DNA of 64,000 nucleotides from Hyphochytrium catenoides (GCA_900088475.1 FLMG01001956.1:1-64000), one strand, 5' to 3'; counted from the stretch's first letter, positions 27,088-28,807 are shown. The notes: generated from the letters alone by a model not told the origin. Made by a program: numbers and translations.

Positions 27088-27378
27088 ACAGCAGTGCTTT
27101 TGCCTGTGAACTAGTCCCTCCAAGTACCATTTGTCTTCTGTTTCCACCACCATGTTTTTTCTCTGTTATGTGCACCATGGCGAACTAGGCACATTTGTCT
27201 CTCCCTCCGTCCCATTCTTAATGACGCGTTGGCTTGCTATGCCATACTTTTGTTAGTACGTACATGGCGCGTCTCCACGTACGAAGTACTGAAATAACAC
27301 TAAATCAACAGGAAAAAGATTAGTAGGGACATCCAGCATGTATTATATTAGTCCAAGAAGTATAGCCTAGTATCACGC

Positions 27379-28807
27379 CTAGTATTGCGCCTTCTTTGCA
27401 GCCTCAAGAGCGAGAGCCTTCTCACGCTTCTCAAGACGTCTCTGAGTCTTCAGACCCATGACACCGCCGCCCCACTTGCGGTCAATGGAGTCATTGTACT
27501 GAGCCTTGAAGTTAGAAGCCAGAGTCTCAAGCTTGCTCTTGTCCTCCTTGGTAACGGCGGTGAGAGCAACAGCGGTGGCATTCTTCTTGTGGACCAGAGT
27601 ACCAAGGCGAGCCTTGCCCTTAACGATGCAGTATGGGACGCCCATCTTTCTGCACAGAGCAGGGAGCCAGACAACAAGCTCCACAGGGTCGACATCGTGG
27701 GCAATAACAACCAGCTTTGCCTTCTTGTTCTCAACAAGGTAGGTGATGTGGTTGAGGCCGTACTTCAGCACTGGAGGAGGAGCCGTGGAGGCATCCTTCT
27801 TCTGGGTCTTGTCGACGGCGGCGTTCTTGAGACGGTCCTTCTTCTCTGCCTTCGTCTCAGGCTTGTACTTGACCAGAAGCTTGAACAGGTCAGTCGCCTG
27901 GTTCTTGTCCAGAGCCTTGGAGAACTGGTTCAGCGCAGGAGGAACCTTAAGGCGCTGCTTCAAGATCTTGCGCTGGCGCTGGAGGCGGATGTACCTTGGC
28001 CATCTCACGAAGCGGGAGAGGTCGGTCTTGTGCTGTAAGCGCAAAAGGAGGAAAGCGAAGAAGACGGAGCATGAGCCACTCTGCCAAAGACGTTACTAAA
28101 GAGAAGTTAGTTGCAGGAGCTGCTGCCTCTCACTTCCGGAATGTTTCACATGTGTTGCATCGCCTGATGGCGATCACCCTCGTCACGTCCAACCAAAGAT
28201 GTCTCGCGCTTGGCTGAGACACAGTGGAACCACTGATTTGTATCATTGCGGGGTGGGAGACCGCTAGACGCACAACATGACACTGACTCTGTGTCCATCT
28301 GCCCGAGACTGCCGAATGGGAAGCTCTAGGGGTACAGAAGGGGTCGCACTCTGCCCAGGTTCAAGCTGAGTGGACCAAGAGGCTCAGGTCAAGCGGGTGG
28401 CATGGAAACGCTCACAAGTTTGTGTCATTGCGGAGTGAGGCAGCCGCTAGATGGAGAAGACGATGATTCGTCGCGACAATACTCGTCCCATAAAGGTCAG
28501 AATAGTGTATACGCGATACGTATGCAAACGTCTCCCATCCTGCTATTCTATCATTGCGGGCAGGATGTTCCACCCCGCTAGTAAGGAAGCTCATCGTACC
28601 CTAATGTCACCACCAACACGGAAGTTGCGTGGGGTGGAGGCGAAGAGAGGGCTTGGCTTCACAGCCTTCTTCTTGGGGGCCGCGGCGGGCGCCTTCTTCA
28701 CAACCTTCTTGGACGGCTACGAGAAAAGAACAGCAAGGACAGAGAAGGGTTATTACTTCCTCTCACTTTACAGACCAAAAGACAGCCTATAATCTCCTTA
28801 TTACCAT
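27379..28807 (-). CDS. RPL7A: 60S ribosomal protein eL8 (L7a), 257 aa
   Basis: Exons 28807-28805 (ATG only), 28716-28600 (PSKKVV...[10 protein letters not shown]) and 28032-27379 ([24 protein letters not shown]...[38 protein letters not shown]...KWGGGVMG). Confidence 0.98.
28093..28111 (-). promoter_or_regulatory. Putative alternative (unproductive) branch point and 3' splice site in RPL7A intron 2
   Basis: Sense ACUAAC-uucucuuu-AG|UAA. The AG is at 28097-28096, 63 nt upstream of the productive AG, and the UAA is in frame for this phase-0 intron. Confidence 0.55.
28241..28267 (-). promoter_or_regulatory. Intronic kink-turn-like RNA motif, copy C
   Basis: Sense RNA CUA-GCGG-ucucccacc-CCGC-AAU-GAUA(CAA). 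Confidence 0.6.
28423..28450 (-). promoter_or_regulatory. Intronic kink-turn-like RNA motif, copy B
   Basis: Sense RNA CUA-GCGG-cugccucacu-CCGC-AAU-GACA(CAA). Confidence 0.6.
28549..28581 (-). promoter_or_regulatory. Intronic kink-turn-like RNA motif, copy A
   Basis: Sense RNA CUA-GCGGG-guggaacauccug-CCCGC-AAU-GAUA(GAA), beginning 18 nt after the 5' splice site. Confidence 0.6.

Follow-up and report, generated by a model that had tools for sequence, protein, structure and literature searches.

A candidate unproductive 3' splice site and a conserved, probably pseudoknotted element in an eL8 (RPL7A) intron of Hyphochytrium catenoides

The minus strand of the window (the whole 64,000-nucleotide stretch of Hyphochytrium catenoides DNA that was analysed, FLMG01001956.1:1-64000) codes for the ribosomal protein eL8 (RPL7A). 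Upstream of the productive acceptor of its second intron lies a real candidate for an unproductive 3' splice site, the use and regulation of which are putative. Sturdier than this decoy site is a second result, the occurrence of a conserved pseudoknotted element in the eL8 introns of Hyphochytrium and oomycetes; since intron 2 carries a conserved structured RNA, a regulated eL8 intron is plausible. A previous interpretation of the same DNA (hereafter the sequence-only reading) had proposed that an unproductive splicing switch resides in this intron. The anatomy, the quality of the site and the stop on which this proposal was built were retained by our analysis, but conservation of the arrangement, an alternative transcript and a link between the element and the site were not found.

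Gene model and 3' region of eL8 intron 2

Both productive junctions of the gene (ATG|CCG and AGG|CAC) were borne out by a public spliced cDNA, the 906-nt Logan contig L002 (run SRR24052878), which matched the three exon pieces of the window at 94-100% identity (Table 1). Exon 3 was searched as is, this natural cDNA standing in for the joined sequence. The gene is single-copy in the H. catenoides genome and its closest named relatives were those of oomycetes, with 66-71% identity. A mean intron length of 208 nt and a heterozygosity of ~2.75% have been published for H. catenoides (PMC5795050), and owing to this heterozygosity the cDNA, which is 97% identical, may be the other allele. Intron 1 displays a branch-like UAAUAAC 33 nt from its AG, within a 37-nt AG-free zone. 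Retention of intron 2 would lead to a stop after two codons (GUA CGA UGA).

Table 1. Features of the eL8 gene, the 3' region of its second intron and the conserved element (positions in the window unless another locus is named)
Feature	Position	Strand	Details	Support
Exon 1, coding part	28804-28806	minus	ATG alone	cDNA L002 joins ATG straight to exon 2
Intron 1	28717-28803	minus	87 nt by coordinates	cDNA L002 junction
Exon 2	28600-28716	minus	39 codons (PSKK...GGDIR)	cDNA L002
Intron 2	28033-28599	minus	567 nt, phase 0, GUACGA...CAG	cDNA L002
Exon 3, coding part	27377-28032	minus	217 codons and TAG (27379-27377), L7Ae domain	
Element, copy 1	28551-28580	minus	UAGCGG-loop-CCGCAAUGA; loop pairs with tail to ~28526	
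Element, copy 2	28425-28449	minus	pseudoknot tail to ~28400	
Element, copy 3	28243-28266	minus	pseudoknot tail to ~28218	
Branch-like ACUAAC (heptamer AACUAAC)	28106-28111	minus	5/6 pairing with own U2, branch A 28107	
Pyrimidine run and proximal AG	28096-28105	minus	8-nt run uucucuuu (28105-28098), AG 28097-28096	
In-frame UAA	28093-28095	minus	would be first codon past proximal AG	
Second branch-like heptamer UAGUAAC	28092-28098	minus	5/6 pairing with own U2, branch A 28093	
CAGAG with two further AGs	28079-28083	minus	CAG 28083-28081, AG 28080-28079	
GGCUCAU	28071-28077	minus	sole branch candidate within AG-free zone, 3/6 pairing with own U2, A 28072	
AG-free zone	28035-28078	minus	44 nt, 80% pyrimidine, upstream of productive AG	
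Productive 3' splice site AG	28033-28034	minus		cDNA L002
Element locus, window	28218-28580	minus		
Element locus, L006	1812-1866			
Element locus, L152	1269-1323			
Element locus, L150	1324-1378			
Element locus, L007	1781-1836			
Element locus, L151	1262-1318			
Element locus, L008	1743-1793			

In the 3' region of intron 2, all letters that the sequence-only reading had given for the acceptors were found in place on the minus strand. The branch A of the upstream heptamer AACUAAC (A28107) is 11 nt from the proximal AG and 74 nt from the productive one. A second heptamer, UAGUAAC, which was missing from that reading, lies 14 nt downstream of the first, spans the proximal AG together with the UAA, and has its branch A (A28093) 60 nt from the productive AG; the direct succession of AG and UAA may have arisen as a by-product of this branch-site-like motif. 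AGs occur at +11, +26 and +28 after A28107 and at +12 and +14 after A28093, and both heptamers stand upstream of the AG-free zone. Inside this zone, the A of GGCUCAU is 39 nt from the productive AG, and the motif is similar to the eL8 branch of Saprolegnia.

Translation from 28098 gave TAG TAA, followed by an open frame into exon 3. As previously claimed, the intron is phase 0 and use of the proximal AG would end the protein at 40 aa; the claim that the CAG would instead add 16 in-frame codons was reproduced by translation, and use of the AG at 28080-28079 would shift the frame. With its branch, pyrimidine run of 8 nt, UAG at +11 and premature stop, the proximal site is a complete, compact acceptor of a kind used elsewhere in the genome, as in NHP2 intron 1. 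Searches for the stop-containing isoform returned the productive form only, as cDNA L002 and as the one protein cluster obtained at an identity of at least 90%, of which the productive 257-aa form is the single member; this is a weak negative, as unstable isoforms seldom assemble. An exact-sequence lookup of the 40-aa product, taken from cDNA L002, gave no record, which is likewise a weak negative as short ORFs are seldom called. Recursive splicing via a 5' site regenerated at AGG|UAACGU was rejected by inspection, being out of frame.

Branch points and choice of the 3' splice site

The U2 snRNA of the genome carries the canonical GUAGUA and served as the reference against which each A within the final 90 nt of ten hand-checked introns was scored. 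These introns belong to eL8 (two), SNU13 (one), NHP2 (three), eS6 (two), eL30 (one) and uL1/RPL10a (one), so that the comparator set is small, with nine introns besides eL8 intron 2. The upstream site had been credited with the better branch point, and scoring agreed (5/6 versus 3/6). In the six comparator introns with a strong branch (4-5/6), this branch was found 12-33 nt from the AG and within the AG-free zone, the sole exception being NHP2 intron 3, where an AG located 6 nt past ACUAAC is skipped. The short distance between branch and proximal AG, which had been raised as a caveat, is indeed near the lower limit, and it is plausible since, in NHP2 intron 1 (54 nt), the AG in use follows CUGAC at a distance of 12 nt.

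The weak branch and long pyrimidine tract attributed to the productive site were both recovered, but they do not make it abnormal. The eL30 (RPL30) and RPL10a introns likewise combine weak branches of the CUCAA/CUCAU type with AG-free pyrimidine tracts of 60-67 nt, and the eL8 productive acceptor is of the same type. The layout of eL8 intron 2 as a whole is without match among the curated introns or the orthologous introns. The statement that other introns use CTRAC shortly before the AG proved to be overstated: strict CTRAY in this position concerns a minority, 19% of rough ab initio introns versus 6% of random AGs. Three ab initio intron finders run on 212 kb were too noisy or drifted onto CT microsatellites, and their sets were used for this one rough figure only. 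No intron was found in the domain of RPL3.

Chance occurrence of the branch motifs was estimated after these motifs had been seen. ACTAAC shows no enrichment over the window, with 25 matches versus 22.4 expected, and its frequency, of about one per 5 kb per strand, corresponds to a ~1.6% chance of falling within 80 nt upstream of a given acceptor. The distribution of distances between CTAAC and the next AG in the window gave no signal. For a pair of 5/6 heptamers separated by 14 nt and both followed by an AG at 11-12 nt, chance is roughly <1%, a post hoc figure. The presence of UAGUAAC beside AACUAAC makes pure chance less likely, and, as their tandem occurrence is unlikely by chance, the two branch-like motifs probably bind U2.

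Under the AG-exclusion-zone rule, an AG-free zone normally has the branch at its 5' edge and splicing takes the first AG within reach downstream; human introns bypass AGs situated a very short distance past the branch (Gooding et al. 2006, PMC1431707). Intron 2 of eL8 breaks this rule for its two best branch sites. One explanation, which we regard as rather unlikely, is that AACUAAC and UAGUAAC are the true, distant branches of the productive AG and that there is no poison site. The near AGs would then be skipped as too close (+11; +12 and +14) or as devoid of a pyrimidine tract, the spliceosome would take the AG located behind the long pyrimidine tract, and AG|UAA would merely be part of UAGUAAC, which itself holds both the proximal AG and the UAA. 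This explanation is favoured by homology with the branch of Phytophthora and Pythium, whose eL8 introns have (U/A)ACUAAC, 31-37 nt upstream of the productive AG, as the only plausible branch. Additionally, all AGs intervening after A28093 are at ≤15 nt, in the bypass range of Gooding et al. (PMC1431707), NHP2 intron 3 skips an AG 6 nt past its ACUAAC, and the sole mRNA recovered is the productive form. However, A28107 is followed at an ideal distance by a CAG (+26) and an AG (+28) that are unmasked by structure, an AG at +12 is used in H. catenoides (NHP2 intron 1), and every comparator intron and every relative has its branch at the AG-free zone or inside it. The rule that defines the distant-branch class, namely that no usable AG lies between branch and acceptor, holds neither from A28107 nor from A28093.

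Structural masking of the proximal AGs was not predicted, local folds being no better than shuffles (z +0.3 and +0.4); the fold of the whole intron gave a z of -1.2. In yeast, 3' splice-site choice can be assisted by structure (PMC3239191), and eL8 intron 2 differs in that no masking structure is predicted. The reading in which upstream acceptors compete with the productive one, whether regulated or not, is favoured by the canonical rules (PMC1431707), by the local 12-nt precedent and by the unmasked CAG at +26, and we hold it to be quite possible, if short of probable.

Two minor observations were made on the comparator genes. NHP2 intron 3 (L157 ~1363-1429, contig C3717) is a miniature of the eL8 layout, with AACUAAC, an AG at +6 that would shift the frame into a stop and is evidently bypassed, and a used CAG at 17 nt. 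RPL10a (L162 1-100, contig C1045) has a (CT)n microsatellite just upstream of its start, and its first intron, of 282 nt, ends with a 60-nt AG-free CT-rich tract.

The conserved element and orthologous introns

The codon position of intron 2 (GGDI[QR]|[PH]K) is common to six oomycetes (Phytophthora infestans, P. kernoviae, Pythium oligandrum, Saprolegnia diclina, Aphanomyces euteiches and Albugo candida) and to the ochrophyte Chrysoparadoxa. The orthologous introns of oomycetes are 192-374 nt long. An element of the form UAGCGG-loop-CCGCAAUGAYAYAAA...YGUGG was found in three copies in Hyphochytrium and in one copy in each of the six oomycetes. Its hairpin loop can pair with the tail in 9/9 copies, through covarying loop/tail pairs such as CCACA/UGUGG, CCACG/CGUGG, CUCAC/GUGAG and AUCCUGC/GCAGGAU; because this pairing extends to all nine copies and covaries, the element is probably a conserved pseudoknot. 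An Rfam scan of the eL8 locus and of seven orthologous loci returned nothing relevant and no family for the element. A pattern scan of metagenomes for the element yielded 120 loci, none of which encodes eL8, and one chance match with the extended motif; the pattern used was too loose.

The 3' ends of the oomycete introns differ from that of Hyphochytrium: the motif preceding the AG is (U/A)ACUAA(C/U) in Phytophthora and Pythium, at 31-37 nt, the branch region GUGCUCAUGC in Saprolegnia, at 15 nt, and UCUUAC in Aphanomyces, at 17-18 nt. No AG lies between branch and acceptor in any of the six orthologous introns, the AG-free zone being clean. The CTAAC...AG-stop arrangement, whose conservation in relatives had been put forward as a check by the sequence-only reading, is absent from all six. 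This absence argues that the poison acceptor is not a conserved output of the conserved element. The conserved part of the intron is the element and not the putative poison acceptor, and the role of the element in oomycetes, whatever its nature, is fulfilled there without such an acceptor. The candidate unproductive site is thus specific to the Hyphochytrium lineage.

In Hyphochytrium (28118-28126, minus strand), P. infestans and Saprolegnia (positions 325-333 of the L006 intron and 255-261 of the L007 intron), the branch site was also seen to be preceded, at 0-12 nt, by a GCAGCAG(C) stretch. This stretch is absent in P. kernoviae, Pythium, Aphanomyces and Albugo, and is perhaps a coincidence of CAG repeats.

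The element was compared with the kink-turn model, made of a stem, a 3-nt bulge and tandem sheared G-A and A-G pairs. The bulged strand CCGC-AAU-GA fits this model, whereas the partner strand UA-GCGG gives A-U where the kink-turn has A-G. Instead of the pseudofungal element, the eL8 intron of Chrysoparadoxa australica (L153 1514-1576) hosts a box C/D-like unit of ~56 nt, in which a terminal stem, GGGGUGCC/GGCCCC, flanks AUGAUGU ... CUGA (fold of -20.1 kcal/mol, z -1.3). A kink-turn-forming RNA in the eL8 intron may be older than Pseudofungi, or this may merely be a hosted snoRNA.

Vertebrate RPL7A hosts snoRNAs. The element could similarly be a hosted small RNA, box C/D-like and Snu13-bound, rather than an eL8 sensor, in which case the intron would be long for that reason and its 3' region would be unrelated to feedback. 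Besides the vertebrate host gene, the C/D-like mini RNA in the same intron of Chrysoparadoxa, with its terminal stem and AUGAUGU ... CUGA, and the C-box-like AAUGAYA adjoining the stem of the element point in this direction. We nevertheless consider a hosted RNA very unlikely, as no Rfam family matched, the C-like box has no D box (CUGA) to pair with, its partner strand being UA-GCGG, and three copies per intron are unusual for a guide RNA.

No RNA structure tying the element to the decoy site was found beyond chance. The stretch of 35 nt that precedes ACUAAC is able to pair with copy 2 of the element (-29 kcal/mol, z -1.7), a value matched by 7% of shuffles; this pairing was rejected as evidence, since elsewhere it was significant only in P. 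infestans and was absent in P. kernoviae. The lack of significant pairing between site and element is consistent with the decoy being an unregulated cryptic site or an evolutionary relic, used rarely or never and without any role in dosage, as are the lack of conservation of the arrangement in relatives and the frequency of ACTAAC, no commoner than chance in the window. An ancestral ACUAAC would have been stranded by expansion of the pyrimidine tract and replaced by a new branch, any products of the site being cleared as noise. Such an origin seems unlikely to us: two 5/6 heptamers 14 nt apart with AGs 11-12 nt on are expected by chance at roughly <1% (post hoc), and, in a ribosomal-protein gene of high expression, a strong decoy should be costly if used unregulated.

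Competition between acceptors and its relation to known systems

If the acceptors compete, the two tandem U2-matching branch sites, with their AGs 11-12 nt on, would form self-contained compact acceptors in competition with the productive acceptor (AG 28034-28033). U2 bound to AACUAAC would make the first AG (28097-28096) the expected acceptor, the message would read UAA at once, and a 40-aa peptide would be produced from a transcript with a 3'UTR of ~770 nt. From the presence of the conserved pseudoknotted elements in the same intron, we infer that eL8 could tune the use of the decoy through them. That the upstream site is both used and tuned by eL8 in this manner is doubtful, regulated use being what the sequence-only reading had proposed, and the rest of the confidence given to competing acceptors goes to competing use without regulation. 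In a more explicit version, eL8 would sense its own level via the three kink-turn-like copies and this sensor would shift U2 from the weak branch to the decoy branch. Improbable as this version is, it would, if true, represent the first circuit of splicing feedback to be reported for eL8 outside animals, with a sensor that is ancient and conserved (all oomycetes sampled) and an output that is lineage-specific.

A gene with the UPF1 zinc-binding domain is present in the genome. The stop of the predicted isoform would fall after the last exon junction. As intron 2 is the last intron, decay of the 40-aa isoform could not follow the exon-junction rule and would need a long-3'UTR mode; with or without decay, this isoform is unproductive. 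Among the hallmarks of AS-NMD, a competent stop-introducing site and UPF1 were thus found, and observed isoforms and a conserved alternative region were not.

Unproductive splicing and NMD of C. elegans ribosomal-protein genes were reportedly described by Mitrovich and Anderson in 2000. In C. elegans, rpl-7A, rpl-1/L10a, rpl-3 and rpl-12 undergo unproductive splicing with NMD, with an alternative intron of unusual conservation and with each protein setting its own isoform ratio (Takei et al. 2016, PMC4937301). The case of Hyphochytrium resembles that of rpl-7A in that the gene is orthologous and a stop-containing isoform, here predicted, arises by alternative splice-site choice. However, isoforms were seen experimentally in C. 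elegans, whereas only the productive one was found here. The position of the stop after the last junction excludes exon-junction NMD in Hyphochytrium, unlike in C. elegans, and relatives have conserved the upstream element but not the poison site. If true, the proposed circuit would be one more ribosomal-protein feedback by unproductive splicing, as in C. elegans rpl-7A and rpl-1 (PMC4937301).

The feedback logic of the proposed eL8 case would be akin to that of yeast RPL30, RPL22 and archaeal L7Ae. Yeast RPL30 autoregulates its splicing via a kink-turn in its own pre-mRNA. An intronic switch has been described for RPL22 (PMC13630204). By analogy with RPL30 and RPL22, a protein of the L7Ae/L30e-fold class would act on a structured motif in its own transcript and make splicing less productive, binding by eL8 being putative; unlike the eL8 proposal, these yeast systems involve blocked splicing or intron retention and no decoy acceptor. 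In archaea, a k-turn in the 5' leader of the L7Ae mRNA mediates feedback by L7Ae itself (PMC5539422, PMC6298567). A direct homologue, eL8, would here sense its own mRNA by a k-turn-like hairpin, but the archaeal control is translational, in a prokaryote, and does not involve splicing. Likewise, 15.5K-bound intronic kink-loop RNAs suppress the excision of their host intron (bioRxiv 10.64898/2026.08.03.742641). They share with the proposed eL8 case a K-turn-type RNA that lies inside an intron and acts on its splicing, but these RNAs are mammalian, Snu13-bound, processed small RNAs and work without a poison acceptor.

Use of the upstream site under the control of eL8 would represent a compact case of ribosomal-protein dosage control by branch-point competition, an example from the little-studied Pseudofungi in which a concrete output is assigned to a deeply conserved intronic RNA. 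Even if the site is unused, the intron of a highly expressed gene carries two near-perfect branch sites ahead of its AG-free zone and is a useful test case for the rules of 3' splice-site choice outside yeast and animals.

At the other end of the intron, GUAC was observed as the start of introns in three L7Ae-family genes, namely eL8 intron 2 (GUACGA; window 28594-28599, minus strand), SNU13 (GUACGA; L156 ~1666) and NHP2 (GUACGC and GUACAG; L157 ~1187 and 1363), the introns of eS6, eL30 and RPL10a starting with GUAAG. The eL8 donor continues into CGAUGAG, and a similar (C/U)GAUGA(G/A) occurs just upstream of the element in Albugo and Aphanomyces.
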